A stretch of 52,987 nt of DNA, counting the filler, from Bipalium vagum (lineage: Eukaryota): assembly GCA_037834085.1 (NCBI GenBank). It is 3 parts of 3 records of this genome, joined end to end, with 100 filler letters (N's around TTAATTAATTAA, not from the genome) between each part and the next. Parts side by side here need not be neighbours in the genome. Positions count along the whole stretch, not along the records: positions 36,977 to 52,987 come from JBBMKC010132493.1; 2 more parts are not named here. One strand, written 5' to 3'. The notes beneath the pieces are model-generated. The model was not told the origin of the DNA. It searched no databases and saw only the letters and a list, made by a program, of their open reading frames with translations. Numbering within the stretch: position 1 is the first letter of the stretch; each line of letters starts with the position of its first letter. Position numbers and translations under genes: made by a program. Shown here piece after piece: positions 5,268 through 52,987 of this stretch.

Positions 5268-5475
5268 TAATTAAAAGATTTTTCATTGATGTTCAAGCAC
5301 TCTTTCCAAGTCAATAATAGATTAGTAATTCTTTTATACTAAAACGCCCGACTTCTGGAATCGGAAAACTGAGCTGTGTCGTTTTCAATGGTATTTTGGT
5401 TGTGAAACATTTTATCAGCAAGAAATGCATCTATATGGCTGAATAGATGATAATCTGTCGTTGAAAGATGAAGTG
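5268..5475 (-). mobile_element. Mariner transposase C-terminal fragment
   Basis: Minus-strand LSTTDYHLFSHIDAFLADKMFHNQNTIEN...WKECLNINEKSFN*, typical of a mariner C-terminus. Confidence 0.7.
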
Positions 5476-5529
5476 ATACAAACATGCAATTTCGTAATAA
5501 TTTTGAACCTTGATAAGCTTTAGCAATTA

Positions 5530-6673
5530 TATAGGGTGTTTCTCTAAGAACTACCGAATGTTATTGAAGAAAACATATTTAAGTTTTTAAAAGATCAAAA
5601 GCTCTAATTTAATATAAAAGCAACTCATTACATTAACATGTGAAAGATAATATCATTCAAATGACTGCCAGGACTTTTTTCGAAAGATCTTATTTTTTCT
5701 TCAAATTCTTGATCGTTTTCATGCATGAGTTCCTGTTCAACACGAACAACAATTCGAAAGCTTAGGGATAATTTTGGCGCGCACAACCGCCCCATAGAAA
5801 AGACAATCCGTAGCATTATTCAAAAATTCGAAGACACTGGATCCATGTTAGATAAGCATAAATCCTTGAGTCTGAAAACGGCTCGTTCGGATGATAATGC
5901 TGCAATGATTAAAGGAAATACAAAGCATTACTACAAGTTATCAACGTGACGCTGTTCAAAAAAGTTGGATCTTTTTACTACATCACTGTGGCAAATTTTA
6001 AAGGAAACTGAAACCTTACAAAATTCAGTTGATTCACATTTTAAAACCTACAGGCCATGGAGAACATTGTGTGTTACTCGATTGGGTCTTTAAAAAAAGA
6101 AGCGGCCGATCCAAATTTCTGCTAGAAAAGCATTTCCACTGATGAGGCCAATTTTCATCTCAACGATATCGCAAAATGCTATCAACTTTTCTCTGGTCTC
6201 AATTGGAGAACATAAATTTAAATAACTTATGGTTCCAATAAGACATGCCAAATAGCCAAAACAACAATATCTTTATTGCAAACAAAGTTTGCAGGTCGAA
6301 TTATCTCCAAGTACGGTGATATCAACTTGCCACCAAGATCATGCCATTTGACACTGTTGGATTATTTTCTTAGGGGCTATGTTAAAAGTAAAGTGAACTG
6401 AAGCAAACCACAAAGCATTAAACAGTTGAAAGTTAATACTCAAGAAGTGAAGAGCACAATTGGACCAAATTTATGTGTGAAAAAAATCGAGAATTTTGAG
6501 GAAAGAATAAGATCTGGTGAAAAAGCCTCGGCAGTCATTTGAACGATATTATCTTTCACATGTAATTATAATGAGTTGCTTTTTATATTAAAATAAAGCT
6601 TTTGGTGTTTTTTTAAATTAAAAAGATTTCTTCAACAATAACGTTCTGTAGCTCTTTGGTGAAACACCCTTTA
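5530..6673 (+). mobile_element. rosa/DD41D-like Tc1-mariner element with long (about 200 bp) TIRs, decayed
   Basis: TA-tagggtgtttc...gaaacaccctt-TA ends; about 5533-5727 is the imperfect reverse complement of about 6474-6670. Motifs IRSIIQKFEDTGS, FTDEANFHLN, LPPRSCHLTLLDYFLRGYVKSKV and C-terminal GSHLNDIIFHM*. Confidence 0.88.
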
Positions 6674-8149
6674 TAAATAATTATATATCACCGTGTGGAA
6701 AGTATTATTTCTCCTCTTGGTACTGCAAAGACGTTTTAAAGACACATGTTTGGTTTTGGAATAGTGATCATTTATTCCGTTCAATTTATTAATAGATCGA
6801 AATTGTACACAACATTGATCGGATCCTCCATTATAAAAATATATTTCTGCTTTTCTGGATTTCAATTTAATTAAAAAAATCCAATTATATTTTATTAAAA
6901 AAAATAAAAGAAGTGTTTAATTATAGATTTTTTTTCTCTAAAAAGATTAGTATAATTAAAATTTAAAAATTTTTTCCTTTTTCTTTTTTTGCTCATCATT
7001 TTAATATTGAATGAAAATGTAATTAAAATTTTATTCTTTATTTTCCAGAAGAAAAATAATCTAAATTATAATTTTATTAGACAAAATAACCAATTTTGTC
7101 TGTGATCGATTTTTATTTATATTTTTTTTGGTGAAAGTTAATTAAAATTCGCTGAATAAATTTTTTAAATTCTACTACCAACTTCGTGGGTTAACAACTT
7201 TTGATACCCTTTCAGTTTCATTTCTACGGTACAAAAAGCCATTTTCAAAAATATTCAATCAATAATTTTGAAAAATTTAATAAAACCATCGATGTGTGAC
7301 CCCTAATTTCTCGGATGTAAAATAACATAATAATAATAATAATAAATTACATATAATTTAGTAAATTATACATCCTCTCAACGAGAATTAAGGAATTATT
7401 ATTGCGATAGGAGAAAATAATTCCAACTCTGTACGGTTTCAAGTTGATTAATAATTGTAATGTTTCCACGTCCAGAAAAGCGTTGCTGTGAAAAAGACGG
7501 GAAATAAACAAGACAAAAATTCTTCATAATTATTTTTTGTATGAAGAAAACTGTAAGTAATAATCTCTTAGTGTGATCAAACGTTTCTACGAATGTTCCA
7601 AATGAATATTTTAAGAAAAAACATTAATTAATATAATTATTATTGTACTATATATTAAATTTATGTAATTATATTTTATATTATATATAAGTTTTAATAA
7701 GTGATTTAATATTATTTTTTGTAAATAACAATTTGTTTAACTACACTGTTTAAATATTGAATAACAAAATTTGAAATCTCTTTTTCTGTTCTACTAACCT
7801 CAGTAATATTTTTGTCTACCAATGGAAATCTTTGAAATATTATAGATTTTAGAAATACAGTGCAAACTCCAAAAAATTAACATTTCAACCATTTACATTT
7901 ATTGTCTGTTAATTGAGGTCCTAAAGATGTTCCAAGAGATACCTTTTTAACAATCTCGAACAGTTGACAACAGATTGCTTGGGACTTTGTGTTCTGTTCG
8001 ATGCAACAGAAATTTTCTAACAAGATTTGATGATGTAACATTTAAAGGATGTAACATTTCTTTCCAATTAAAAACTTTCAAAAAATAATAATATTACAAG
8101 ATTACGAAGAAAACTAATTCATTAATCAAAGAAATATATAAGATACTGT

Positions 8150-8608
8150 ATATTATACATAATGAGGTATGTTCAAACCGATACTTCTGTGAACGATAAA
8201 ACAAGTGCTTTGGAGATATAGTAGAAACATGCTTGACAAAGTTAGATTTAGACTTAATCAATTTAACCTTCTTTAATAAATCTGTCTAAATTCTTCATCA
8301 TATTTATGGGTCGTTGTAAATGATAGATTGTCATTGTTCAATGTTTTTACCATGTCTTGGTGGATTTAAGTAGTTGAATATTTTTTTACTAAATATTTGA
8401 TCACTGCTGAGATTTCAAATTTGTCCATTTCTTAAAACAGTCGAAACTAGTTAAATTAAATTCATATAGAAAAACAGAAACTTTACCAATTGATTCGATA
8501 TTTAAAATTAATTAATATCAATAATGTAGTTTTACGATAAATATAATGCTTTGGTTATACAAATTTTCTTCGTGTTTCATTTCTCGAACTTTTCATAACA
8601 CCAGAGTA
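8150..8608 (-). mobile_element. Mariner 5' fragment
   Basis: Minus-strand MDKFEISAVIKYL start near 8427; mariner-type terminus tactctggtgttatgaaaagttcgaga near 8608. Confidence 0.6.
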
Positions 8609-8685
8609 TATGAAATGACCTATTACACAATATAAAATGAAAGAATAAAATCCAATAAACTTAAGCGGATCACTTGAGAATTGAA

Positions 8686-8885
8686 ATCCGTTGTAAACGA
8701 TGGAAAACGAAATAGAACATTGTTTTGGAACTGATAAACCGTCGTTGTAAGCAATACTTAGTTGTTGAAGTCCGGTATAAGCGAATCTTTTATTTACCTA
8801 ATTAAAAAGAGAACTGGTCCATTAGATTATCGACTATAACCAGATATCCGTTATAATCGATTCGTTTTAACCAGAGTCGACCGTA
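8686..8885. mobile_element. pogo/Tigger-like MITE end with subterminal repeats
   Basis: About six degenerate copies of a YCGTTATAA-N-CGA-like motif ending in gagtcgaccg-TA. Confidence 0.55.
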
Positions 8886-10039
8886 CTCTCCAGACCTGGT
8901 TAGACCTGATTATTATCTTTTCCTTTTCCTTTCTGAAATTCCGGTGTCATCATATATGTAGTTTTGTTGATACAAAAAATCAGATCCTAAACAGAGAGAA
9001 AATACATTATTGATTAACATGTTATTATAGTGAAAAATGTTCAAAATAAATAAATCTTTAAAAATCAGAAAAGTGTTTCAATCATTATTGGAAATTAAAG
9101 AACATAATTAATTATCATTGATTTTCTTCGAAAATATTCTTCATTTCATAAAGAACATTATATATAATTTATATTCAATATTGATATTTCTTGAAAATGA
9201 AAGTGAAATAAATTTTCTGTGATATATAAATTATAAAAGTGAAATAATTTTGCTTTTTGATGTTTTAATATATCTTAAGTTTCGTATTTCAATGGGCCTA
9301 AATATTAATGCATACAATATAGGGATTTCTTTTATGTTCGTTGTCATGATTACTCGTATTTTCCCTTTTGGACAAATCCTTGCAGACTGTATTCTTTCCT
9401 AAAAATAAAATCACTGCGAAATATTTATTTATTTATATATATAAATAAATAAAATAAAATAATAGCTAATAGGCGAATGTTGAGTATAAAATAACAGATA
9501 TTATAACAGATGTAAGAGATGTCTAAGCTACGGGCTGCCAACAGACCGAGGATGTCTAAAATCGGTTTCAGCTCTGATTATTTTCGTGATTATTGCTGTG
9601 AATATGAAACCATTGTTAAAATTAAAGTCGTTATGTCGTGATATTTTTATTAGGTGCTTCTCGAAGACTTTGTAAAATATAGAATTTTCTTTTTCTTTCT
9701 TCTTGAGAAGAAAACAAGAAATTTATCGAATATCGCTCCTAATTTTTAATTATTAATTTATTTTTTTTATTGACTTTAAGACTTAATAATAATAATAATA
9801 ATGATAATAATAAATATTATTTAAACAAATATGTAAAAAATGAAATTGTGCTTTAAAGATGTAAATGTGCAAAAATATGAATGCAGAACATGCAGAAAAA
9901 TGCATTACGTAAAATGAGTTATTTTTGGTTGCCCTACTTATTAAACATTATTAAGAAAATTGATTTTTTGTTTAAATAATTCTATTAATAATAAATAATA
10001 ATTATTTTAATTCTAATAATAATGTTGAAATTCATATCT

Positions 10040-10342
10040 GTTATTGTCAATATTTCTGCTTAATTCTCTCGTAACCGAAACCAATCCCAAAAATATTTTT
10101 GAAAGGTGTGAATTGAACGATTTCATATGTCATGATTGGTTTAGAAACTTTCAAAAAAATGATTTTGATCTCGATAAGCGAATAAAGATCGATAAGACTC
10201 ATTGTTTCACCAATATCTATTAGAGGAGGATAGAATGGATGAGAGCACAAATAAAAACCATTTCAGTCATGTTGGAGAAATAGGTTTAGTGGAAGATGAG
10301 ACTAAAAAAGGAAAATGAACTTACTTTCAGAACCAATTGAGC
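10040..10342 (+). mobile_element. Short decayed mariner derivative, possibly same family as 2116-2780
   Basis: CHDWFRNFQKNDFDLDK HTH-region motif; 3' ttactttcagaaccaattga resembles the TIR at 2759-2780. Confidence 0.5.
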
Positions 10343-10389
10343 CAACCCAGTCATGGGCAAGCACTGGGCAAGCACTGAGCAGGCATACA

Positions 10390-11050
10390 CATTATCTTTT
10401 GACAAATCCCTGTATATATTAAATATAAATGATGTAATCAAGAAAGCACATTGGATTTTTTTAAGACGAATTCTTTTTCAGTGAATACGATTGATTTATA
10501 AGTTTTAGCTTATATAACTTAACAAAATAAGAGATGTCACGGTTGAAATAAATGGTAAAGTATTTGTAAACAGAAAGTATTTGAATTTGGTAATCTTTTC
10601 CGATTAAGAAACGGATTCGCCGAAAAACCATTTTTGACACATTCTTTTTTTAAGAAAGGTAAAAGTGTTCAATTTATCACCAGTAAGATTTATGAACTCT
10701 ACGAACAAGGTACTATGTCCACAGAAACAATTCAAAAATGGTTTATGAAATTCAATAAAGATATTATGACTCAACTGCTATATTTACCTACACACCCCCC
10801 TTATGATCACCATATATTATTATATCCCTCCTAATTGTATTAACCGATGGGAATTTTAATTCTCACTTGAATGACTTCTCCAGTAAGCCAATGGATTTCT
10901 ATCAGATTTCTATTTTCAAATATCGGACCAATGGCGAAGAGTAATTGAACAGAATGGAAAATATTTTGTTAAATAAGACTGTTAAAAATTGTTTGGTTTT
11001 TCTTAGATTTGCTTGGTCAAAATATACAGGACTTTCCAAATGACTTAATA
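10390..11050 (+). mobile_element. Internally deleted mariner
   Basis: NHF*HIL, KKGKSVQFITSKIYELYEQGTMSTETIQKWFMKF, THPPY and C-terminal QWRRVIEQNGKYFVK*; degenerate TIRs sharing cctgtatat/atatacagg. Confidence 0.75.
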
Positions 11051-12065
11051 TTTTGAAAACTGTATTGTCTTTTTCTTACTGGATAATTTCTATCAAAATT
11101 TAGAGGAAAATGTTTTCTTTTGTTGAGATTTTAATGTAACTATTTTAACACTATTTAAGGATAGCAGTAAAAAGATTGAGGATATAAGAAATGTGAAACA
11201 AAGTTGTACTCAATTATTTTTCTGTATCAGTTTTAATTGGAACACAAGCCAAGATATTCAACAAGATATATTGAATGTTACTCGAAATTAGTTTGGAGAA
11301 ACGTATTTCGTCAGTATCCTGATTTCTAAGACATTCTACAATTTTATAACTATTTTTATAATTATTTTTTTAAAATTATTTTATTTTATAAGTATTTAAT
11401 TTATATATTTGCTTGATTTACCAATGTCAAGTTCAACAGTACACGATATTGTCTGGCTTATTTATTTCCTTGAATTTTAAGTAATACAGATTAAAACAAC
11501 GATGTATTTCAACACGATGTAAATAAAAGGTTGTCCCATAATAAATGACATATTTTGTAGTCAAAATTTCTATATCTGTACTCACTAGATGCGAACGATA
11601 AATGAGATATAACAATATATCATTTTAAAAGGTTATTTTCTGCTCTATCTATCTGTATAGTGATTATTTATTATACATATCAAATGTATTATCAAATATT
11701 GGTTGTTATTTATCAATATAACCTCAATTATATCAATTATATCTTCAATCAATCTAACTGTAAAAGTAGGTGAATGAAATTTTCATATTAATATTATTAT
11801 TAAATGATATGGTAAAACAAGAACTTTAAATAACTAAAATCATGAATAACTTTTGACTCAATGTGATATTTTAGATAATTGATGGAAAAGTTATTATTAT
11901 CCAAACAAATCTTTTTATTTATTTTGCAAAATCTTATAGAAAAAAATATTCTTTGTGGAATTCTTTTAAAAAAAGATTATTTTATTTTATATTTTTTTTG
12001 AAAATATTCATTTGATAATAATGCGACATAAGTAATTATTATTGAAAATAATATAACAATTTCAG

Positions 12066-38329: not shown

Positions 38330-38672
38330 GGTTACATGACGAAGGCTATACCGAAAGTCTAAGTAATAAAATCAAAAATAATCGACTTTTTCTTCAAAAT
38401 CGAATGGTAACATCTGAAGATAAATGCATTTAGAAGAAAACCAAGAGATTTAAAGATATTATTCAAACAGAGGGTATTAGAATATCATCAGAAATGTGTG
38501 AAAGTGATATCAATGATTTTTATAATCGTTTAAAATTGTAATTATTCTCCAGAAAAATATTATAAATTTTCATAAGTAAATGTTACCTTGTCAAAAATCT
38601 GCAGTCTTTATTGAATATATTTAACGTTATTACATTTTAAATTGTGATACTTACTTTTTATACACCCTGCAT
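38330..38672 (+). mobile_element. rosa/DD41D-like 3' fragment
   Basis: DFFL, LKDIIQTEGIRISSEMCESDINDFYNRLKL; terminus tacaccctg near 38661-38669. Confidence 0.6.
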
Positions 38673-40199
38673 AGTAATAAAATACTTCTCACAAATGTTT
38701 ACTTTTGGAATATATGCTGACAATTTTGAATCAATATATTATTTGAACAACGATTTAATCAATGAAGATTTCAATGAATGATATTTGTTAATATTTATTA
38801 AATGATTTTGTATTTTAATAGTTGGAGTCACATTTGTGTATACCTAATATTATTATCGTTAAATATTATGTTTAACCTATTTTCATATTATTATTTTTAT
38901 TTCTTCTTCTTTGACATTTTAATAATGTTATTTAATTAAATTTGAAAAATAATTAATTTAATTATTTTTACATTTAACAAAAAAAATTTTTTTTCGATTT
39001 GGTAATACAAAAATTTTCTGAAAATATCGATCAAATATTTGGTGAATTAAAACAAAATTATTTCTTCAACAAATTTATTTCATTATGTATATAGAGAAAA
39101 TGTGTAAGAGAATCTGGTTTATTTCGTAAAATATGGAAAAAAAAGAAACTGAATTTCTTTTTATAAAATCGACTTTGACGAAAATATTCATTTTGGTTAC
39201 ATTTTCTTTAAAATATATTTCCAATTTCATCGGTCGTATAATAATAATAATAATAATGAAAAATATTTTACGTTTCTTTCAAAATAATTTCAAATTTTTT
39301 CAACCAAATTCAGCGTAACATTTTAATCATAAATAAATAATGTTGTGGAAATTGAGAAATTGAGAAAATTTATTTTAATATGTGGAAAAATATTTTTTTT
39401 TAAAAAATAAATTATGAAGTAAAACACAGAAATAATTACGCGGGGATCTTCCTTCGATAATCGTGATAATAGAATTAATTGATTTGTTTTACTGCATCAA
39501 ATGGTTTTTATTTAGGACACAATCGATAAAATTTTAGATATTTATAACAACATTGCATTTTTCCTATCACGGATATTGAGGAATATTCCGAAATGAGTAC
39601 CATTTGGGCGAAGAGATGCTGTTTCACTTTAACATTAAAATATGTTGTGTAGAGCCTCAAATAATATTTGGCGTGGCTCATTGTGATAATGGTCCAAGAA
39701 AGCAACTTAAACATTTTTTTCAAGGGATCTAGAAGCGATTATTTTTAGGAGGAACATAAAGAGCGCCTTGAAGGAAACAATATGAAGTATTGGTTGATGA
39801 AGATCTGAGTTAAAGTGAAAATGGTACTGTCGAATTTTTAAATGTTTGTTGGTCATCGGTCAATTTACAATGGAAAGGTGAACTCATTTATTAAGGTAAT
39901 GGGAGAGTCTTTGAAAGATGGAGAGTTAGAAGCGCGTTTTGGCTGTTTGGGAAAAAACGTTCTGTCTCAAATGTTAGAATAACAATATGAAATCGGGTTA
40001 TCCTAATCAACCAGTATCATAGAGGAACATCCATGTGAAGTAGCTGTTGGAATCTGATCAGACGATTACAAATGAATGTTACCATGACCTGATAATTAAT
40101 GTGATCCACATGTGGAGACGAGATAACGTATTTTTGATATGAGATGATGTCATACTACCTGTACCAATCTGATTATTTTGAGGCAGTTCTCAATTCTCA

Positions 40200-40450
40200 A
40201 AAGTTAAACATTGACCTTAAAGGAGATGTGTCAAAGACTTAAATAGGAGCAAATCAGATAGGGCGGGATCAGGGATATATGCAGGGTGGAGAGTGATTTG
40301 GAAATCCAAAGCTTATTGTAGCTTTTAGAATACGTTTCATGAGGAATTGTCATGTTGCAAAAGTACTCTTCCACGACTCATCAATACGGATGATCGATTC
40401 GCACTGTGATCTGAAAATCATAAATGTGTTTTAGCTTGGAGCCGAAATCA
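40200..40450 (-). mobile_element. Mariner 3' fragment
   Basis: VLLQHDNS and LHPAYIPDPALSDLLLFKSLTHLLKG motifs. Confidence 0.75.
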
Positions 40451-40692
40451 CTTTAGTTAAGGTTACATCAAAGTGTAGGTCTCATGTGTTACAGTAGAGG
40501 GCTCTTTTTATTTTTTTACGACATGGGATTTGTCAATTGGCAGAAAGATGGCTTCAAGTCATTGAAGATGATGGAATGTATTTCGAGGAATAACTGAATA
40601 ATTTGTGTTTTGTAAATAAAATGTTCTCATAAAAACAACAAAGACGTTTGACTCACCCTGGTGGTTGAGTCACAAATCTTGAGACGGACATT

Positions 40693-41040
40693 ATGTCAGA
40701 TAAAAAGCGAAGGTTTTTCAGGTTGCAATTTCGTTTAGAAGCGGTTAATTATGGCCTGGATTCAACGAATTCAAAGGCCAATAAGCCTTTTTCAGTCCAT
40801 TTAGGTCGACTGAGAAACTGGCTTATAACCGGAAAAATAGTGTGGTGATGAGAAGATAATTACTTCCCTAACTCTTCTTGTAAGACCTCAGTGACCGTTG
40901 TGGCAAGTGGCCGGCCAGGAAATGTGAAACAGAGCCTGGACTAAGTCTTGAGATATCCAATTTCGTGACTTTAGATAAATACATTTAAAAAGGGAAAAAA
41001 TATTTTTAAAAATAGTCCAGTTTTGAATTACGACGCCCTT
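40693..41040 (+). mobile_element. pogo-like transposase N-terminal (Brinker-like HTH) remnant
   Basis: MSDKKRRFFRLQFRLEAVNYGLDSTNSKANKPFSVHLGRLRNWL followed by a GKWP segment. Confidence 0.55.
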
Positions 41041-42409
41041 TTATTTTATGATCTCAGAAAACATAAATTCTTTCCCAATGAAAATTATAGAGGTCGTCAC
41101 CAGGTGATTTTGTTTAGATCAATCATAACATTAAAACAATTAAAATAGATTTTTATGACAATATTTTCTGGTTTCTGACACTGGGATTGGTGATAAAATA
41201 TCACAAAGATATAAAAGTACTTCAATGGATAAGCTTATATCGACAGAAATTGTTTCTGTTTGGTTATTATCTTTTAATAATAATAATAATAATAATAAAA
41301 TATTAATAATAAAACATAAAAAATAAAAAATAAATAAAAAATAAATAACAAATAAATAACAAAAAAATAATTAATAAATAATAAATAAATAAATAAATAA
41401 AAAATAATTATAATAATAATAATAATAATAAAAAAAATATTTTCTGAATTATTATCACATAAAATTAATTTATTGCCATTATTTTTTATGACAGGAGTTT
41501 TATGAAGAAACTTTAATCGCTTTTTATCAGAGTTTGACGTTGACAGTTTTGAATAAATTCATTTAATTTATTTAATAATTTCCTGTAATTGATTTTTCTT
41601 TTCAATATTGAAATTTTTCATTATTTCTCCATTAAATTGTTAAAAAATTAATATATTGATTTTGTAAAGAAATTTTCTTCTCGGTGTATTTTATTTTCAC
41701 TTTATTTATTCTCTTTTTCTATCTCTTTTTTTTAAAAAATAATTTTAATTAAATTTTACCCTTTTTTTATAAATTATCCACATTAAAAATTAAAGATGAA
41801 AAAATACATTAAATTATAAAATCAATAAATGAAAAATTTCACAATCTTTTTTTTGCTGTAGAAATGAATTTTGAATGTAAAAATATTTCCGCTAAGCTTT
41901 TCTCAATTTCAGAAGGAGATCTGAATATGTTTTCAAAATAAATGGAATATTTGTTTTAAAATTAATATTTATTTTATTATTTTTAATATTATTAACTACT
42001 TTTGTTTTGTCTAAATGAAATATGCCTAAATATTATTGTTCACGTAAATTATATATAATTATTTATAAATTAAAAAGGAATCTTATTTAATTAATAATTA
42101 TAATAATTATATTATAATATGCGTCTTAACTTAAAAAAAATGAATTCATTAACTTAAATTAAAATGAATTAACAAATTAAATAAAAATAAATTAAATGAT
42201 TTAATTAAAATTAAGTAATATGAATTAACTAAATAAATTTTAAAGAAATTAATGAATTAATTAAATTAAAATAATATTATATAATTTAAATGATTTAAAA
42301 TAATGATTAAAATAAAATAATATGAATTAATTAAAATTTACTTGTAAAGATATCTTCTGTGTATTTAAGAAAAAAGGAAGATTTTGTCTAATTTATTAAT
42401 TTTATAATA

Positions 42410-43502
42410 TATTGGGTTGGCAAGAAAATTCGTGGGCGTTTTAATATTGTAATTTGTAAATCAATTTTTCATACATCAATCATTCAGTTGTTGTTTAAAT
42501 AATATAATAGTCTTACGCGATAATTAAAATATCATTATGCAAGATAAGAACTGCATTTCCGTTATATTTTGTTGTTATATTTTGAAAAAGGTAATTACTG
42601 TATTATTTATAAATATTATGTTAATTTTAAAAAGGTAAGCGAGTCCCGGATGCACATACGAAAATATGTAAAGTATATGGAGATAATGCTTTATCAATAC
42701 ATGTATGCGAAAAGTGATTCGCCAAATTTAGTTGTGAAGAATTTGATGTGATCGATGCATCCCGCTCCGGACGTTAGGAAAAATTGTGCCTTCTGAGATT
42801 CGTTTCGCGAATCAATGTTTGGGTACCGCAAAAATTAACAGAGCAATTGATTTCCAGGGATGAAAAGTGGATTGTCTTTTACAATGTGGTCCGCAAAAGG
42901 TCATGTGGTCGTCCTGGTGAGCCACCAAAATTGTCACCAAAAGCAGGAATACACTCCAAAAAATGATGCTTTCTATTTGGTGGGTTTTTAAAGGTGTAAT
43001 TTATTACAAGCTGTTATCATCTTGCCAAACGATTTATTCGAATGTGAACTGCCTCCAATTGACAAAGGTGAACAATGTAATCCACGAAAAGCGTCCAAGA
43101 TTAGCAAATCGGAAGAGTGTCATCTACCAATACGACAATTCCAGGCCTCATATATCTTTGGTCAACCGGAACAAATTACTGGCTCTTGGATGGGATGTTA
43201 TGTCTCATCCTCCATACTCACCGAACTTGGTTCCTATCGATTATTATTTGTTTCTGTGACTGCAGAATTCCTTGAACGGGAAAACATTCAATGACTATGA
43301 GTCTGTCAAAAGAAACATTGAAACTTTTTTTTTCAAAGAAAACCCAGAGGTTCTACAAATGTGGCATCATGTCTTTGGCAGAAAGATGAAGAAAGATCAT
43401 TAATAATAACATTATTTTAATATTAACATTATTTTTGTCCATAAGAATAATTGATTTTATCTTTTCTTTATAAAGCACACGAACTTTCTTGCCAATCCAA
43501 TA
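42410..43502 (+). mobile_element. Mariner element, mellifera-like, internally deleted, with an intron-like insert
   Basis: TA-ttgggttggcaagaaaattcgtg / cacgaactttcttgccaatccaa-TA; motifs HFRYILLLYFEKG, WVPQKL, DEKWI, YDNSRPH, HPPYSPNL. Confidence 0.95.
42591..42634 (+). other. 44-nt GT-AG intron-like insert in the mariner transposase ORF
   Basis: AAAAAG|gtaattactg...tgttaattttaaaaag|GTAAGC; removal restores FEKGKRVPDAHTKICKVYGDNALS. Confidence 0.7.
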
Positions 43503-43552
43503 CATTTCATGGAATATTTGAAGTAATAATAAAAAAGTAAGAATCGTGATTT

Positions 43553-43860
43553 TAATTGGACCGAGGAATAAATTATTTCGTTTTTTTATTTATATACTTT
43601 AATCAATGCAATAAAAAAGTTCTTGATTGTCAATCACTGATGTATTCTCCATCGGATTGAACAATTTGAAATCATCTCTGTTTGAAAGCCTCCATATCTT
43701 CGATAAAATTCTGATAAAAAGGCTGAGATCTCTGATTTGATCTTGGAACTCTTGTCAACTGATTTTGGATAGATCTGATTCAATAGTAAATTGATATTTC
43801 CAGATCTGAAAAATTGGTGGATGGGAAAAGACTTCCAAATCCGTACTCTTTATATTCTCT
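43553..43860 (-). mobile_element. Mariner 3' fragment
   Basis: Minus-strand LEVFSHPP and *FQIVQSDGEYISD* C-terminus. Confidence 0.65.
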
Positions 43861-44204
43861 CAAGTCAAATTCTAGTGGTATGTGGTCTCTTGTTACCGTA
43901 TTGCAGGAGTACACTATGATATTAAACTACAATTTAAAAGTTATTCAAATTAATTTTATCAAAACCAATTAAAGATTTATAACGTTTTTAATAAATCAAT
44001 AAATATAAATATTATTAATGAGGATAATAATATCAATAATATTAATAAAAATGTAATTATTAAAATAGATATTCGATAAATAATAGGCATTATTTAAAAA
44101 AGATTTAAGTAAAGGAAATCCTTAACCTAATAATTCTTATATTATAATAATATAATAATATATATAATAATAATAAAAAAAACTATAATATTGATAATAA
44201 TAAT

Positions 44205-44690
44205 GACTCAAATTGACTCTTTGCGAAACTGTGATGTATGTGATAATAAAAATATCGTAAAGTATTCGGACTTGAAGAGAAAAATTAAACTCACAAAACC
44301 TCATTATAAAATCCAACTGAAGACGTTGCTTATTGGATCTCTTGGGACGATACATCCGGATGCAATAGACATTCTAATCAATATTGGAATCCCAAAAAGG
44401 AAATCAAGTGCACTTTTAAAGTCATGTGCAATATCAATTATTGAACAATCGACGAAGATCTAGAACTTTCATGCTGCATGATATTTAGTTAATTTTATGT
44501 AGGTTGAATCAAATCAATTATTCAAATGAATGAAATTTGTCAAAAACCATGCTGGGTTATTGTATCTATGGCACTTGTGCTTGTTTATTTAATTTATCAG
44601 TCTCGTATGCATCAAGATTTTTTTATAAATAAAATGTTATAATAATAATTATAATAATAATAACAATAATAAAAATAATAATAATAATAT
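44205..44690 (+). mobile_element. 5'-truncated REL-endonuclease non-LTR retrotransposon (NeSL/R5/R4-like) 3' end
   Basis: NKNIVKYSDL..IQLKTLLIGSLGTIHPDAIDILINIGIPKRKSSALLKSCAISIIEQSTKI*NFH matches the K..KY..L / IGSLG / S..IW..H tail of REL domains; AATAAA at 44628 followed by (AAT)n. Confidence 0.8.
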
Positions 44691-46492
44691 TAACAATTAA
44701 GAAAAGGTTAAATATTCTGATTTGAGGCTGAGATGTAAAATAACATATTTTTTGTATTAAGAAATTCCTCGTTTGAAAATATTATTGAGAAAAAAACGAT
44801 TTATTATGTAAAATTTATTTTATCAACATTTCTTAATCGCATTTCAAATGGAATGAAAAAGAAATTTATCAAAAACAGTTTCTCCTCAGAAGGATGCTTT
44901 GCTGCCAGCACTTTTGACAAAGAATCAAGTATCCATTATTTCTCACGTTCTCCACAACCCAGTGGCTTCCTGCTTGTTTGGAAATCCTTTTTCATGTCAA
45001 AGTGTTTGATTAACATATTTACTTTTGATGTAAGAACGATTTCATAAGTAAACAATGTTGGAGAGAATTGCGAGGATTTTATTTTATTAGTTTATTTTTC
45101 AATTTATTCTGTATAACTTGGCTAATTAACCATATTTGTGTTTCACTTATTCGTAAGCCCTGCGTACATTCTGTGGTGTAACAATAATTTTTATCTGAAT
45201 TTATTTGTTTTTGGCCAATTAATTTATTTTAAATTATTTTTAATTAAAATATAATAATATATATATATTTTTAAATTAATCTCATTTTAAATTAGTTTGA
45301 AATAAAATTATATATTTTCGAGACAAAGTGAAATTTTCAAGATATCATGATAATAATTATCTCATTATTATTATTATTATTCATAATTTACAGTATTTTA
45401 ATAACTGTAGACATAAAAACAATTAAATAAAAGAATGCAATATATATATATATTTTTAAAAAATAATGTAACAATATTTACTTTATATAATGCTTTATGT
45501 TGGGTTGTCACTCATAATAATAATTATTAACAAAATTAAAAAATATAATCTAAATAATGAATATATTAAAATATAAAATTACTAATAATATTATTATTAA
45601 TATTAATAATAATAAAAGAAAAAATTATACTGTTCTTTTTCTGATACTTAAGCTATTTTAATTAATTAATTAGTCCAGTATTTTTAACTGATCCAGAATT
45701 TTATACCAGTAGCATTATTTTATCGTTGATGATATTGTGACATGGAGAATGTAATCTTGAGCTGGATAGTTATATTCCTCATTAAACCCGTTGAAGGTCT
45801 GGTAATGGAAAATTATTGATTTTTTGGTGATTTATTCCGTAGTATTATCAATAATCTTGACTATTTTAGTTCCATATTCTAATTGTTACTGGTGGAAAAA
45901 TAATGTCTTAGTGTATCATTTTATTTTTCAATGGATAATTATTGAATCTAACCATATTTAAAGTAAATGAGTCAGATTAGCGTAATTTGGTTAATATTCA
46001 AATATTGATTTATATTATATTAAAATATCATATATTGATTTCAGAAAAAATTAATATTTTCTTTTTATTTTTCATTTAAATAAAAATGGTTTCTTAATTT
46101 TGTTAACTTTTATATCTATAAGGAGTAGTTCGAAAAATTAGTTTGCCTGAATTTTTTTAATAACAACCTGACGCCTAAATTAACGATTATTAAATGTTTT
46201 TAATTTAAACTTTTTAAAAATTATTATGTTACGGATATTTAGATATTCAAATAAATAATTTAAATAAATTTTGGTAAACGTAAATAATTTAATTTTGCAA
46301 GAAGGTGAGGTCCATATTTGAAAAATATTTTTTAGTAATCGAATTTAATGAAATATTATTATTGCTTTGATCTTATATTATTATTAAAAATGACAAGGCA
46401 AGAATATAACTATATCTCTTTATTATTAATTTATTCAATTTTTAGACATTTTCAAACGTTTTACTATGCTCACTTTTATATTTCTGTTTACA

Positions 46493-46494
<2 letters not shown>

Positions 46495-46560
<66 letters not shown>
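46495..46560. repeat. (TTA)22 microsatellite
   Basis: Seen directly; it explains the poly-Leu ORF 46348-46566. Confidence 0.95.
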
Positions 46561-46561
<1 letters not shown>

Positions 46562-49362
46562 ACTGACTTGACAGTTCTATTTAAATTTTTTATATTTTAC
46601 AGAAATTTTCCGGTTTATCTCGAGCACCCGACATAATATGTAAAATAATTATTGAGATTTAAAATATTTATTTTTTGAAATTGAAATAAAATTTTTAAAA
46701 TTATTTTTTTATTTAAATTTATTTAAACTAGAGACTCTTCTAAATATCCGTTCATTTTTCCATTTGCAAAAAGATATTATTTTCTATCAAAACACCTTTC
46801 TATATTATCACAAGTACTACCACGAATCGATCGAAAAATGTTGAATTAAAAACCACTCAAGCGTGGTTAAAGTATTTTAAAAAAATAAATTTAAGGTAGA
46901 ATAATAGTGGAAAATAGATAAATATGTGAGAGTTATCTGTGCATGTTGAAATACAATTGAACGCCTCACGATTTACGTACAAATATTATATATATAATTA
47001 AAAATTTTATATTTTTATAATCCACGAAAATGAATTGAGAACCGAAGAAGAATTTATTCATAAAATATTTTTCGTAATATAAATTCAATAAAGTGAAAAA
47101 ATGTCATAAAAAAGAGGAATTAAATTCAGATAAAATATTTTTATACTACATTATAAATTCAACAATGTTCTTTTCAGTGAAAGAGAAAACAAGTTTTATT
47201 TAAATTTTATTTTTCCAGATTGATTAAATATCGAATCGTCTCACAAAAAATATAAATAAATAAAATTTATTTTTAAATAACGGATAAAAATATTTTGAGA
47301 GAAATGAAATGAGATTCGTTCTCCCGTTCAGATATATAAAGTATTATTATTTATATCATAAAGTAAAACTGATATAAAATTTTAGGGTTAAAAATAAATA
47401 TAATTAATATTTAATAATATCTAATGAAACAGAAGATATTATTTGTCGAGCAACAGAACCGGAAATAATCCATATTCATTAAATGAAATATTTTACAATA
47501 TTATATCCAGAACGACTATGATATAAAAAGGATAAGAACCTGGTTAATTAGAACCTCACTCTTTAAGTGGGTTTGTTTAAATGGCACTGGTCCGAGTATT
47601 CAACAATTATTTGAATTAATTATTTAGAGCTTTTTGATAAATAAATTTAATATTAAAATTAATGAGACTGTCAAAGTTTTCATAAATATTTTAGGAATTG
47701 GAAAAAATAATATAGGAACAGTTTATATTTTTGTTTAAACATGTATGTACGCACGAGAATGTTGGATGTGATTTTTGCTTATGTATTATAAAAATATAAT
47801 TTTATTTTACTTTATTCCATGTTAAAAGGTCAACAATAGGAAGTACGATTAATATTATTTTATCAGTCAATCAATATAATAGCTGTAAATAAAATAATTA
47901 TAATTTCAATATTTTAATATTGATCGGCTACGCTTAATCTGACTAACTGTCTTTTATTACGGTTAGGTTCTACAGTAATGTCACGTGTAAATCAAAATAA
48001 CTTATAACCACATTAATCAAAATCAAGAAACGCCTTACAATTAAGCGCAAACACTATTCATGTAAAAATCAAATAAGATAATCTAATATCAAACGAATTA
48101 TAATACTGAATTAAAGAACCATACTTTAAGTTAACGACTGAATTCACTAACAGAGATTAAAATGAAAAATATATTAAATTTATAAAAAATTAATTTAAAT
48201 TTTAAAAAATAAAAATAAGATAACTCATTTAGGTTAGTTGGGTTCCAAGGACCCCGAGTGTCACACGAATCATAATTTCAAATAGCTGTCGACTATTAGA
48301 ATCTTCATCAACAAATCGGATAAATTAAAATTAAATCTTCTTCATAACGTGTAATAGATTAAAATAATTGTATAATATATATTTTAATAATAATAATAAT
48401 AATAATAATAAATCTGTAATAAACCAGAACTAAATAATTATATTCTTAATAAATAATTTTGATACATTTAATAATTCTATTTTTGTCTTTTAATAAATGT
48501 TTCCAAAAAAATTATAGCTATAATTACATTTTTTGTAATTACTGGTGCATTTCTAAAAAATTAATTAATATATTTGATGAAGTTAGTCGAGAGTAATTTT
48601 CGCTAGAAATAATAACAAAACATTTCGTTTTTATTTATTATTTGTTAAAATATTAATAAAACAGTGCCCATTTATTGCTCTATCATTAGTAAATGAAATA
48701 TGACTATTTTTATAACTTTAAAATTTTTTAAAGAATCCTTAAATATGAAAACTTTAGTGAAATATTGATTATCATAAATAAAAACAAGTTTTTATTTTTT
48801 TTAAATAAGTATTGATTTAACTTATAAATAATATAAATAAATAATAAATTAAAACAACCTGTATGAGTCTATTTATTATTTATTATAGAGTTTGAGGAAA
48901 AAATATTTTTCTGCACCTTAAAAAATGTTACAAATTGAATTATAAAAATAAATGGTTAATTTTTTAAGTTTCTTTGGATATCCGAAGATATAAGCGACTG
49001 TTAAAATAACCATTTTTAGTGTATATCAATAACTCAAATTTAAAATAACATTTGTTTAAATAATTTAAATATTTTGGTGAAAAATTTATTTTCTCACTCA
49101 TCTCAAACTAAATTTATTAAATAATTATTAATTAGAAGAATATTAGATTTGCAATTTTGGATAGGTTAGTAGATTACGTGAGAAAATGTTTATAAATATA
49201 AGTAGAATATTTCATTTAGGTGATAGAAAAAGTCAATAATTAACAGCATCGCAGAAAAAGAGAAACGTATAACTGAAGTCTAGAAAGATATTTGTAAATC
49301 CTACAGATTGCTAAGACAATCTAGAAAAGTTGAGGCTTTCATCCTGTTAGTTGAAATTAGCA

Positions 49363-49426
49363 ATAGGTACCGAGATTGGAACCCGGGACCGTTCATATGT
49401 GCATGACCTGCTCTGAACGCTGACTA
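49363..49426 (-). pseudogene. tRNA-derived sequence in the 3' LTR
   Basis: GTAGTCAGCGTTCAGAGCAGGTCATGCACATATGAACGGTCCCGGGTTCCAATCTCGGTACCTA: D-arm, anticodon arm and B-box remnants; the 5' acceptor strand is deleted. Confidence 0.75.
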
Positions 49427-49593
49427 CTTTTCAATTATCTCATATCCGCCTCTTTTGTAGCTGACAGTCAGACCCTTAACTGTCCCGAGTCTCTTTACTT
49501 CAATTTCCATTCCAGTCCTTTACTTTTTTACTTTCGAGATCTCGTCTGCTGGTTGGTGTCCTGATGTTGTCGTCATGTTAGTTGAAAATTAAT

Positions 49594-49654
49594 TGGACAT
49601 ACCGGAATTCGAACTCGGGGCACATGAACTGCCTGACCGCTAAGCTACATCCCC
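49594..49654 (-). pseudogene. tRNA-derived sequence (Ala-like acceptor and D arm) in the 5' LTR
   Basis: GGGGATGTAGCTTAGCGGTCAGGCAGTTCATGTGCCCCGAGTTCGAATTCCGGTATGTCCA: A box TAGCTTAGCGG, B box GTTCGAATTCC; anticodon arm partly deleted. Confidence 0.85.
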
Positions 49655-50640
49655 CGACGAATTTTCAATTTATCTCACACATCCAATATTGTTTCAAAAG
49701 TATTGGAAGAGAAAAGAAGAATAGTAGGCCGAAACAAAAGCATTCTGTTGGAACAAGGCGGATAATTATCCGAGAAGCAAGCACTAAAGCAACCAGTCTA
49801 CAACGTATAAAAACAGATTTAGATTTAAATGTTTCAAAAGACACCATTGGACATTTTAAAATCTGGTAAAAGTTCGATTCAGAAAAAATGAAAGTAAATC
49901 CGAAATTGATGCCACCACACAAACAACAGCCACTTTTTTAGATTAAAGGTAAATTTAATTGAGAAGATCAATGAAAAATGTTATATAGGTTGACGAAATA
50001 AACCTAATCTAGTAAACCAGAAGGTTGTCCGTACTATTGACACTATTTGAGGAAAAAAATTGGATCGATCTTGGAGACATACTCAGAAATGTCTCTTTAA
50101 TGATCTGGATACAAAAGAGAATTGTATACCACAACAAACTTCTCAAGTTATTAATAAAAACGGATCTGACATTAAATATTATCATTTCATTTTAATTAAA
50201 TTTATTTCAGTATTTAATATATTTTTATGTGTGACAATAAATGTTATGTTTCCTCAGTTTTTATTTTTCTCTAATTAAATTTTAAGTGTAAATTCAATAA
50301 TATGTACCTATATGCTCTAAAGTTTAGTCTAAACTCATAAATTTTTATTTAGTGAGAAAACCTAGCTATATTTAAGTACTTAGCACGATATATTGTTGTA
50401 TGTGTAAGTGCGCAATTAAATTAGTGCCGTATTTGACGTTCGTCAAATAAAAATAAAATATATGTACACTAAGATATTTAACCAACAGAATTGTTGCTGC
50501 ATTAATCGGGAAAGGTAATACAATTAATTTTCAATGTCTGATTAGAATGTCGATTTAATATGTAATCAATTTTCAGGTTATTTTTAAAATTTTTGCATTG
50601 TTCAGATCTAATCTCAGTTATTTTGAGATATCGGTAATTT

Positions 50641-51610
50641 TATGACAGAAATAAGAGAATTATTAGATTTTGAGAGACAACTTATAATTCTCCTTAGAAA
50701 GGAGAATCTTATGTAAGGATTATCAAAGTGTCCAAAGAGATTATCTGAAAAAACAACAGTTTGACAATCTTGTTGCCCTTTTTAAAAGCAGATTCATTAA
50801 CATCTGGCCGGAAAAGAAAAGCTGGACTCTCTAAATGCTTTTCTGATGTGAAGGTCTTAGGTTTATCACCCATTCGTGTAGAAGATACTGAAAGAAGGAA
50901 CTTGAGTTAAACAGAAATCACTGGGAAATGAAAATATCCAAGACATCTGTTTTTAATATTCTTAAACAAGTGCTATTAAAGAATAAAGTGTAATTTTTTC
51001 ATTTACAATATCAAGCAATGCGTATGAGTAATTCCAGTGCTCTTGGTGACCATTTTGGACAAATGGTTGATTGATAGAAATAATGGTTCTCAGATGAAGC
51101 AATATTTTCATTACTAGATCCTTTGAATTCTCAAAATGACAGAATTTACCGAGAGAAAAGTGTAAAATTCACAAACACAATGAAAATGTACTGGTTAAAT
51201 ATAAATATCCAATCATTTCTTTTTTGTTATGGTGCAGTGTCTTTGTATGGGAAATTTTGTTTCAGGTCAGGAGCATTTTCTTCAATGTAGAAGAAAAGAA
51301 AACTGTACATCCAAATTTTTATTGCTAGGACTGTACCAGAACCCAAACTGTCAAGGCTACTTTTGCCTTCTTGCGAATCTGAACATTAGCCATCAAAATG
51401 TTATGATGGTTATTGTATTTGAGGTTTGTTACTGATAGAGACACAGAAAAGTCGTCTTGATATAAATATATTTGGATATATGGAATAACATGAAGTAATA
51501 TAGAATAATGTTACATCGGCCACACCTCGAAATGAAAAAAAAGCTCTTATTCCACGATTAAAAAAAGGTAAAGTAGTGCAAGGAAGCCATTTTAAACATT
51601 GTATATGAGT
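50641..51610 (+). mobile_element. Decayed DD37D/DD41D-like transposase
   Basis: ISKTSVFNILK, WFSDEAIFSLLDPLNSQNDRIYR and C-terminal QGSHFKHCI*. Confidence 0.72.
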
Positions 51611-51689
51611 TTACTGAATATTTGTTGTAAATATTAAAAATAAAAAAAATAGTAAGTTTCCCTGTTTTCTAATAATCACCATAAATATT

Positions 51690-51953
51690 TAAACCAAATC
51701 TGCACAATAACTTTGTTAAAGAATGCCATCATAGAAGTCATGACTAAATTGAGCAGGGAGCAGGTCAAGCGAGCATGAAGAACTTTCTGATCCCAGCTCG
51801 AAGTGGCTATTACCACAAATGGTGATCACATCGAATAATCCTAAAATTTACACTTTCATTCAGCTATGTGCTAATATTTATTGTAATGAAGTTATCAGCT
51901 TAGGTCTTTTATTAAAATTAGAAATTTTCCGGAATTATCTCGACGACACTATA
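51690..51953 (+). mobile_element. maT/DD37D 3' end
   Basis: LKNAIIEVMTKLSREQVKRA*RTF*SQLEVAITTNGDHIE*, then terminus gaaattttccggaattatctcgacgacactata; a related same-orientation terminus lies at 46601-46635. Confidence 0.78.
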
Positions 51954-51963
51954 TTCAAAATTT

Positions 51964-51967
51964 AATA

Positions 51968-52006
<39 letters not shown>

Positions 52007-52033
52007 TATTATTATTATTATTATTATTATTAA
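51964..52033. repeat. (AAT)n-(ATT)n inverted microsatellite
   Basis: Seen directly. Confidence 0.95.
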
Positions 52034-52987
52034 TTGTAATTATTATTTAAAAATGCACAAAATAATTTTTGACACTTTCAAATGCAAATAATATTGTCCA
52101 ATATTGAAATCTTTCCCATTTTATGTCTTACAATCTCACACGTTTTGCAATATAAGATTGAGCTGGGAATTAATTGTCTTCAGAATTTTGTATGAAACTT
52201 CCTCCTGGGAATAAAGATTTAATTATCGGCCGGGTTGGAATTAGTCGTAAAAATGAAACAATTGATCTTTTCAAGAATGTTGTTAAGAGAGATGGAGAGA
52301 AATGGTGATATCAGACCATTCCAAAAAGTAACATTTGTCATGAATATATATTTGAATATATAAAAATAACCAATTTTTTTAATCATTTTTATAAAAAAAA
52401 GGAAATTGAATTTTTTCATAAAATTGAGAGAACGTACGTATAAACTGCCAAGAGTAATTCTTCAAAATTTATTATTTAAATACATAATATTTTAATACTA
52501 CATTTTCATAACACAAAGAATAAAACCGAATTTATAACAAATCTGATTACTTCAACCAAAGGAAGCAATAAGTACAATAAGGTAAACAAAAAGCAGTAAT
52601 GCAAGGATAAGAGGATAGATGGTTAAAATCATCTTTTTTGTATTGCTTTCAGATACTGTCAATTATAAATGATTTGATGTATACAGATATTTATAACTAA
52701 TAATAATAATTTTAAAAATAATAATTAAATCTAATAATAATAATAATAATATTATTATTAATATTAATAAACTTAAAAAGGAGATGATATAGACAAATAT
52801 ACATTAATATATGGTAGTTATATTATAAACCAAGATATATTATCAAATATTATGACACCAGTATTAATAAAACATAAGTAATATATAATAAATATAAAAT
52901 TTATATATATAATTATTTATCACATTAAACAATCCGATAACATTATTATAGCTATGTTTATTATCAAAATGTCTATGCAAGCCTTTA

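Follow-up and report, generated by a model that had tools for sequence, protein, structure and literature searches.

A decayed, gene-less LTR retrotransposon with tRNA-like terminal repeats inserted in a Tc1-type transposase gene of Bipalium vagum

Positions 49340-49684 of the 52,987-nucleotide stretch of Bipalium vagum DNA analysed here (the window; assembly GCA_037834085.1) hold an old, decayed copy of a tiny LTR retrotransposon that has no genes and carries tRNA-like sequence in its terminal repeats. The copy lies in the 16-kb piece taken from JBBMKC010132493.1 and belongs to a high-copy family dispersed among unrelated flanks. Read on the minus strand, the element runs from GGATG through a 104-bp LTR, a PBS-like tract, a 131-bp interior, a purine tract and a 100-bp LTR to a second GGATG. 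Its parts, and the gene that it interrupts, are as follows.

49680-49684, minus strand: upstream copy of the target-site duplication (TSD), GGATG (CATCC on the plus strand), identical to 49340-49344
49576-49679, minus strand: 5' LTR, 104 bp, TG...CA, TGTGAGATA...CAACTAACA
49594-49654, minus strand: tRNA-like core of the 5' LTR, RF00005 score 20.1 bits, anticodon arm mostly deleted
49647-49637, minus strand: A box of the 5' LTR, TAGCTTAGCGG, intact
49616-49604, minus strand: B box of the 5' LTR, GAGTTCGAATTCC, degenerate in the present copy
49585-49588, minus strand: TTTT run, candidate RNA polymerase III (Pol III) terminator and putative end of R, 10 nt before the end of the 5' LTR
49559-49575, minus strand: PBS-like tract, TGACGACAACATCAGGA, a primer-binding site (PBS) decayed in the present copy, adjoining the 5' LTR
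49445-49575, minus strand: non-coding interior, 131 bp, sense strand A-rich and T-poor (A 53, T 19)
49445-49456, minus strand: polypurine tract (PPT), AAAAGAGGCGGA, adjoining the 3' LTR
49345-49444, minus strand: 3' LTR, 100 bp, TA...CA, TATGAGATA...CAACTAACA
49340-49344, minus strand: downstream copy of the TSD, GGATG
49230-49869, plus strand: host gene, the degenerate N-terminal (HTH) part of a Tc1-type transposase, into which the element was inserted in the opposite orientation

The first-pass annotation had described a miniature LTR element on the minus strand, and each part was found where it had been placed. The whole element measures 335 bp, and open frames within it reach at most 46 aa. 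Alignment of the two LTRs gave 76 identical positions among 85 paired columns, with 34 gap columns, and a score about 20 standard deviations above that of shuffled sequences (z ~20). The second base of the 3' LTR has changed from G to A, so that this repeat starts with TA instead of TG. Within the present copy the 5' and 3' LTRs are about 89% alike and differ in their deletions. The flanking duplication is exact at 5 bp, a length read from one copy alone, and the flanks of this copy are incompatible with a 4-bp reading; in this DNA, 5 bp would match at such a distance by chance with a probability of about 0.003. Insertion into a Tc1 HTH region with a 5-bp duplication, also proposed at the outset, was confirmed: the frame at 49582-49866 matches PF21517 (HTH_Tnp_Tc3_2_like, E = 2.1e-7), and excision in silico of the element with one TSD copy left a single Tc1 frame across the join. 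Searches of the 16-kb piece found no further copies of the element, and an exact-protein look-up with the neighbouring mariner frame returned no record. For an unexplained frame close by, an Atlas look-up led only to eukaryotic clusters (Mollusca/Arthropoda).

Evidence for a family came from the contigs of the single public run that contains the locus (not an RNA run), of which 1,931 were compared; depths given here are summed contig k-mer depths and not copy numbers. Summed depth was 43,000-85,000 over the LTR versus about 22 on the single-copy flanks, and over the interior it was 4,400-12,000, declining from the PBS end to the PPT end. Contigs with unrelated flanks (agreement 0.44) broke off exactly at 49576 in 111 cases and at 49679/49680 in 156 (+25), indicating that the repeated unit runs from TG to CA. 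The TG at which the family unit starts lies 24 nt upstream of the tRNA-like start. The first-pass annotation had made its reading depend on other copies that share both termini and have distinct TSDs, and more than 100 contigs with unrelated flanks end at each LTR end. It had likewise counted a consensus without PBS and PPT against the element; tracts of both kinds occur in other copies. The LTR continues into the PBS in 77-92 contigs, which read TGG where the present copy has TGA, and purine-rich sequence immediately precedes the LTR in three other copies (joints that lead from 49679/49680 back to 49469-49494). Taken together, the TGG-type PBS, the purine tracts in other copies and the exact contig boundaries exclude a chance arrangement. 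A metagenome scan with a 17-letter word spanning the LTR end and PBS returned 45 loci, about the number expected by chance on a rough estimate, none with further similarity to the LTR or interior, and a full-text literature search for four sequence words of the family found no paper.

The same contigs show how far the PBS of the present copy has diverged. Its family counterpart starts with TGG in about 96% of the summed depth (at 49573, 18,923 of 19,613, from 81 contigs, differ from the present copy), so the TGA seen here is a private mutation, as had been guessed. Most family members also have C for A at 49568 (20,478 of 20,983 depth) and C for T at 49564 (18,761 of 20,494). For the family PBS, the 3' end of a tRNA-Arg may be the nearer match. 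The tRNA-Ser primer suggested earlier was not supported: the family PBS fits only 10 of 17 places of the one tRNA-Ser printed in Fig. S2 of Kojima (PMC10886601), which was the tRNA compared.

Judged by sequence, the likeness of the LTR core to a tRNA appears weak for the present copy alone and good for the family. In a search of positions 49000-50000, RF00005 aligned over its full model length with 20.1 bits (E = 0.27 in this 1-kb search), which is below the gathering score of 29. ARAGORN predicted no tRNA in the 16-kb piece, either in an LTR core or as a separate tRNA gene, and energy folding of either core alone gave no cloverleaf (z-scores 0.24 and -1.0). In the contigs, the majority letters at 49642 (D-arm) and 49606 (T-arm) are the canonical ones lost from the present copy. 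The complementary LTR deletions that had been reported were confirmed: about 13 nt are missing at the 5' end of the tRNA-like core in the 3' LTR. More of the anticodon-arm region survives there than in the 5' LTR, which lacks part of it, with 86 and 119 contigs breaking off at 49614 and 49633. The 'merged' tRNA built across these deletions fared less well, being a chimera of two LTRs whose anticodon-arm letters differ from the family majority. The core may be closer to tRNA-Ala(UGC). Over 49000-50000 there was no match at E up to 10 to 5S rRNA, nor to the hammerhead that would mark a Retrozyme.

The tRNA-derived sequence with A and B boxes in the LTRs identifies the element as Helenus-type, and these data support the original proposal of a TRIM, a miniature LTR retroelement that is non-autonomous, with a tRNA-like part in each of its LTRs. 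Very probably, it is a gene-less Helenus-type element (TRIMp3 in Kojima's terms) that was mobilised by an autonomous LTR retrotransposon and inserted cleanly at this site. Its RNA would be reverse-transcribed by the enzyme of such a retrotransposon in the same genome, with a cellular tRNA on the PBS beside the 5' LTR and the polypurine tract beside the 3' LTR serving as primers. The partner's integrase would then make a staggered cut of 5 bp and insert the DNA copy there, the target here being a Tc1 transposon. Since insertion, both tRNA-like cores have become incomplete, and the changes acquired by the copy are mostly G/C-to-A/T, including PBS TGG to TGA and 3' LTR TG to TA. Present-day mobility is very unlikely.

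How the template RNA is made is a separate matter. We infer that the A and B boxes within the LTR may well direct its synthesis by Pol III, from about LTR position 25, through a weak T4 run in the 5' LTR, to the T run of the 3' LTR. Under this model U3 would be about 24 nt, R about 70 nt and U5 about 9 nt. The run at 49585-49588 is the sole T4 on the sense strand of the element, and the 3' LTR has TTT at the matching place. A T4 run in the 5' LTR would stop many Pol III transcripts short of the PBS.

It is also conceivable, though we consider it rather unlikely, that the tRNA-like sequence is a passenger, a captured fragment of an old SINE or tRNA, in a TRIM transcribed like ordinary TRIMs by RNA polymerase II (Pol II) or by read-through from a neighbouring gene. 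With a T4 run in the 5' LTR ahead of the PBS, early termination is to be expected, which is consistent with such an origin, as is the A-rich, T-poor sense strand, which is typical of Pol II-transcribed retroelements too; Pol III use is, moreover, unproven for Helenus according to Kojima (PMC10886601). On the other hand, the LTR has just 24 nt upstream of its tRNA-like part, with no evident TATA box, which leaves little space for a Pol II promoter. At A-box and B-box positions where this dead copy has changed, the family majority has the canonical letters, which suggests selection on the boxes. The sense strand, moreover, has no further T4 over 228 nt, and in this DNA a 221-bp stretch lacks T4 on a given strand in only about 3% of cases.

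Far less probable is that the locus is a fragment of a tandem LTR-interior-LTR array, produced by unequal recombination or satellite-like amplification rather than by one integration. Tandem arrays have been reported for one fish Helenus family (PMC10886601), and the contig joints that 'go back' would also be expected from an array. The present locus, however, has exactly two LTRs and one interior, it is bounded by an exact 5-bp duplication on whose removal with the element the Tc1 frame closes, and the joints in question are explained as 3' LTRs of other copies aligned to the better-kept 5' LTR of this one. Least credible of all are two independent tRNA-derived SINE insertions lying 131 bp apart in the same orientation: repeats about 89% alike with different deletions, and a unit depth far above that of most of the interior, could be read in that way, but the unit begins 24 nt upstream of its tRNA-like part, its final letters are CA and it has neither an A-rich nor a LINE-like tail, the interior is repeated too and is joined to the unit through the TGG-type PBS in 77-92 contigs, purine tracts precede the unit in other copies, and the 5-bp duplication surrounds the composite and not single units. 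The contig boundaries, the TGG-type PBS and the purine tracts in other copies rule out two independent SINE insertions, the alternative that the first-pass annotation had itself named as fatal to its reading.

The integrated Helenus-type element thus represents a new family within a kind already described, possibly a variant of it, and not a new kind of element. It had been suggested that a family with a 5-bp TSD in this lineage may be undescribed; its terminal and PBS words are absent from the published families, and the kind of element was described by Kojima in 2024. A bolder reading, which we put forward tentatively, is that the family belongs to an animal Helenus lineage that regularly makes 5-bp TSDs and is moved by a different integrase clade, a further, independent birth of a tRNA-promoter TRIM in a lineage from which none has been recorded, with, very roughly, a thousand copies. 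Candidates for the integrase would then be BEL/Pao, Copia or a Gypsy clade cutting 5 bp apart. If the 5-bp TSD proved to be family-wide in an animal host, the rule that animal Helenus elements make 4-bp TSDs and are Gypsy-mobilised would need widening. More generally, the family adds an abundant member to a class named only in 2024, in which a SINE-like promoter is combined with LTR-type replication. Families with tRNA-like LTRs inflate tRNA-gene predictions and are easily filed as SINEs by repeat annotators. The T run near the LTR end also offers a testable model in which a Pol III transcript would have the terminal redundancy on which LTR replication depends. Apart from these points, the finding is one of ordinary repeat annotation.

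Among known systems, the closest is Helenus, the TRIMs with tRNA-like LTRs (TRIMp3) described by Kojima (2024; PMC10886601). Published Helenus families have LTRs of 104-323 bp and whole elements of 311-1263 bp; their TSDs are 4 bp in all animal families and 5 bp in fungal and plant families (PMC10886601), in agreement with both the name and the 4-bp animal TSDs given in the first-pass annotation. Like them, the present element has two short LTRs that contain, in sense orientation, a tRNA-like stretch with A and B boxes retained; a PBS adjoins the 5' LTR on its downstream side, and a PPT immediately precedes the 3' LTR. The element is likewise non-coding and of high copy number, its 335-bp length and 104-bp LTR fall inside the published range, and its tRNA-like part probably encodes no working tRNA. 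It differs from the published families in its LTR ends, its tRNA-like start and the words of its family PBS, none of which are shared; when six words of 10-13 letters were compared with Kojima's consensus file, no matches appeared other than to generic tRNA box words. Unlike animal Helenus with its 4-bp TSDs, the present element has a TSD of 5 bp, as seen in a single copy.

Cassandra of plants and Ajax of nemerteans are also TRIMs whose LTRs contain an internal Pol III promoter type from a small RNA gene, as is predicted here, and they make 5-bp TSDs, as does the present copy; their LTR insert is derived from 5S rRNA, whereas here it is tRNA-like. PbTRIM of ants (PMC3532108) is similarly an abundant, non-coding animal TRIM with PBS and PPT. 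It differs in its 152-184-bp LTRs, TATA box (Pol II type), tRNA-Leu PBS, 4-bp TSDs (mostly ATAT) and lack of a tRNA-like LTR core (PMC3532108), differences on which identity with PbTRIM was rejected. Finally, the tRNA-derived SINEs (SINE2) share with the present family a tRNA-like head with A and B boxes, short length, lack of coding capacity, abundance and mobilisation in trans. In SINE2 elements, however, the tRNA start is also the start of the element, the far end is an A-rich or LINE-derived tail, and copying is by LINE enzymes, whereas the unit described here has TG..CA ends, with a PBS and a PPT lying between its two copies.

The DNA at 49345-49679, on the minus strand, has every part expected of a miniature LTR retroelement (TRIM). 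LTRs, primer-binding site (PBS), polypurine tract (PPT), interior and target-site duplication (TSD) were all located, as described for 49340-49684 in the first-pass annotation, whose structural interpretation is correct.

49684-49680, minus: upstream copy of the TSD, GGATG
49679-49576, minus: 5' LTR, 104 bp, starting with TG and ending with CA
directly adjoining the 5' LTR end, minus: PBS-like tract TGACGACAACATCAGGA
49575-49445, minus: non-coding interior, 131 bp
49456-49445, minus: purine tract (PPT) AAAAGAGGCGGA
49444-49345, minus: 3' LTR, 100 bp, starting with TA and ending with CA
49344-49340, minus: downstream copy of the TSD, GGATG

Of the 85 paired columns in the alignment of the two LTRs, 76 are identical, with a further 34 columns of gaps; the alignment exceeds shuffles by about 20 standard deviations. 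No frame in the element is longer than 46 aa, and its G+C content is 44%, against 26% for the 16-kb piece around it (36,977-52,987). In the surrounding AT-rich DNA, a 5-bp TSD match at such spacing would arise by chance with a probability of about 0.003; a 4-bp reading of the TSD of this copy does not agree with the flanks.

The element interrupts a decayed plus-strand gene for a Tc1-type transposase, to which it runs in the opposite orientation, and the frame immediately downstream of it encodes a Tc3-type HTH domain (PF21517, E = 2.1e-7). Removal of the element and one TSD copy left a single continuous Tc1 frame over the join, in agreement with the exact duplication and rejoined HTH region proposed earlier. 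Because the host Tc1 copy is full of stop codons, the restored frame is supporting rather than decisive evidence. Four contigs from other Tc1 copies join both flanks while omitting 480-613 bp including the element, with joints that are not exact. Just upstream of the Tc1 frame lies a second repeat (49020-49200), where summed contig depth rises to 2,830 (single-copy DNA: about 22) and several contigs align with 80-87% likeness across about 150 bp. This repeat may be a Tc1-family terminal region or a derived MITE, and no inverted partner was found within the 16-kb piece. A plus-strand frame starting WFSDEAIF (51084-51170), which follows the HTH remains at a distance of about 1.4 kb, resembles the first catalytic-Asp region of Tc1/mariner transposases; a Pfam search gave no significant match. 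The host Tc1 may reach this frame, with AT-rich filler between.

The same piece holds other remains. A mariner transposase fragment (42921-43256, plus strand; PF01359, E = 3.4e-14) has the usual C-terminal motif and an open frame of only 112 aa, and is thus a dead copy. A 109-aa open frame at 44134-44460 (plus strand), with no Pfam match, has unnamed eukaryotic proteins from Mollusca and Arthropoda as its nearest Atlas clusters (scores 0.92-0.93) and is possibly a retroelement protein tail. The mariner fragment, the Tc1 remains and these clusters suggest that the host is probably an invertebrate animal. A 59-aa plus-strand frame at 40669-40845, lying in the sole stretch of the piece with 38% G+C, weakly matches a Brinker/psq-type HTH (E = 0.031) and may represent pogo-like transposon remains. 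A perfect (TTA)22 microsatellite occupies 46495-46560, and many more AT-rich tri-nucleotide and minisatellite arrays occur throughout.

Related copies of the element were sought in contigs of one public run matching the locus (0.96 of sampled words), aligned at 80% likeness. Summed contig depth was 43,000-85,000 over the 5' LTR, compared with about 21-25 over single-copy flanks, and 4,400-12,000 over the interior, declining from about 20,000 at the PBS end to below 300 at the PPT end; these sums are, by the tool's own warning, not copy numbers, and we read them only as a sign of great abundance, on the order of a thousand copies at a very rough guess. Contigs with unrelated flanks (agreement 0.44) end exactly at 49576 (111 contigs) and 49679 (156, plus 25 at 49680). 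The unit that is repeated thus coincides with the LTR delimited above, starting 24 nt upstream of the tRNA-like start and ending at CA. The LTR continues into the PBS tract in 77-92 contigs. Joints running back from the LTR start to 49469-49494 carry intervening letters that end in minus-strand purine runs, for example AAAGGGAGGGAGA and AAAGGAGGGG. Such letters represent PPT regions from other copies, the 3' LTRs of which aligned to the better-kept 5' LTR of this copy. The family seems to share LTR and PBS, with the remaining interior diverged or split into subfamilies. Abundance, exact unit boundaries, PBS, PPTs of other copies and interior depth, taken together, exclude chance and reject two independent SINE insertions.

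About 96% of the depth at 49573 supports a TGG start of the PBS, where this copy reads TGA, confirming the single change suspected earlier; two further private changes lie in the PBS at 49568 and 49564. Among the 16 best-supported differences within the element, 11, the PBS change included, are A/T in this copy and G/C in other contigs, and the 3' LTR, with its TA start, shows a change of the same kind. Decay thus seems to have been strongly AT-biased, in line with a G+C content of 26% in the DNA around the element. Between the LTRs, 9 of 85 aligned positions differ (Jukes-Cantor 0.11), and there are several deletions as well. The element is an old, dead copy, whose age in years would need the host mutation rate.

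Evidence for a tRNA-like core is weak from this copy alone and stronger from the family. The Rfam tRNA model aligned full length to 49654-49594, scoring 20.1 bits versus a gathering score of 29 (E = 0.27 in a 1-kb search); ARAGORN found no tRNA, and no cloverleaf formed when the two LTR cores were folded separately. In the 5' LTR the A box TAGCTTAGCGG is retained, together with a B box that is degenerate; the core of the 3' LTR is missing its 5' part. The earlier merging of the two LTRs into one tRNA gave a chimera that differs from the family letters at 49614-49633. Family majority letters at 49642 and 49606 give canonical D-arm and T-arm letters. The core may be closer to tRNA-Ala(UGC). Most family members have additional letters between 49614 and 49633, the site of a deletion in this copy, and these form no clean anticodon stem, in agreement with the view that such LTRs are promoters, not tRNA genes (Kojima 2024, PMC10886601).

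The LTRs, PBS, PPT, TSD, lack of genes and many copies point to the ordinary LTR-retrotransposon replication route, in trans. Minus-strand synthesis would be primed by a tRNA and plus-strand synthesis by the PPT, and integration would use a 5-bp staggered cut made by the integrase of a partner element. The arrangement of signals makes Pol III slightly more likely than not as the source of the element's RNA. Only 24 nt of LTR precede the tRNA-like start, and the A and B boxes are retained in the family. The sole sense-strand T4 run (49588-49585) lies 10 nt ahead of the 5' LTR end, and no other T run follows until the matching place in the 3' LTR, 228 nt downstream; in this DNA, just some 3% of 221-bp stretches lack a T4 on a given strand. 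Together these features fit a leaky Pol III transcript, which would begin at the tRNA-like start, read through the T4 run in the 5' LTR and end in the 3' LTR, so containing the terminal repeat (R) required for strand transfer. The T4 within the 5' LTR, however, would abort many transcripts, and the interior is T-poor overall (19 T versus 53 A), as in many retroelements.

The family PBS may lie closer to a tRNA-Arg 3' end. It matches the tRNA-Ser of Kojima's Fig. S2 at just 10 of 17 places, which does not support the resemblance to a tRNA-Ser type first proposed. TRIMs with tRNA-derived LTRs are a kind of element already known, named Helenus (Kojima 2024, PMC10886601); both this name and the 4-bp TSDs of animal members had been given correctly in the earlier reading. 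Helenus is recorded from fungi, a single plant and six phyla of animals, within arthropods only in chalcidoid and cynipid wasps, with LTRs of 104-323 bp and whole elements of 311-1263 bp (PMC10886601). PBS types are in common with Gypsy in animal families and with Copia in fungal ones (PMC10886601). Kojima's published Helenus consensus file contains none of the words tested, which came from the LTR ends, the tRNA-like start and the family PBS. The ant PbTRIM, with its TATA box, tRNA-Leu PBS and 4-bp TSDs, is unlike the present element, which resembles Helenus in every structural feature testable here and is a new Helenus-type member. Among Helenus families, those of fungi and the plant make 5-bp TSDs, and all animal families for which the TSD is known make 4-bp ones (PMC10886601); the present element, its TSD read in one copy, is possibly a 5-bp-TSD variant.
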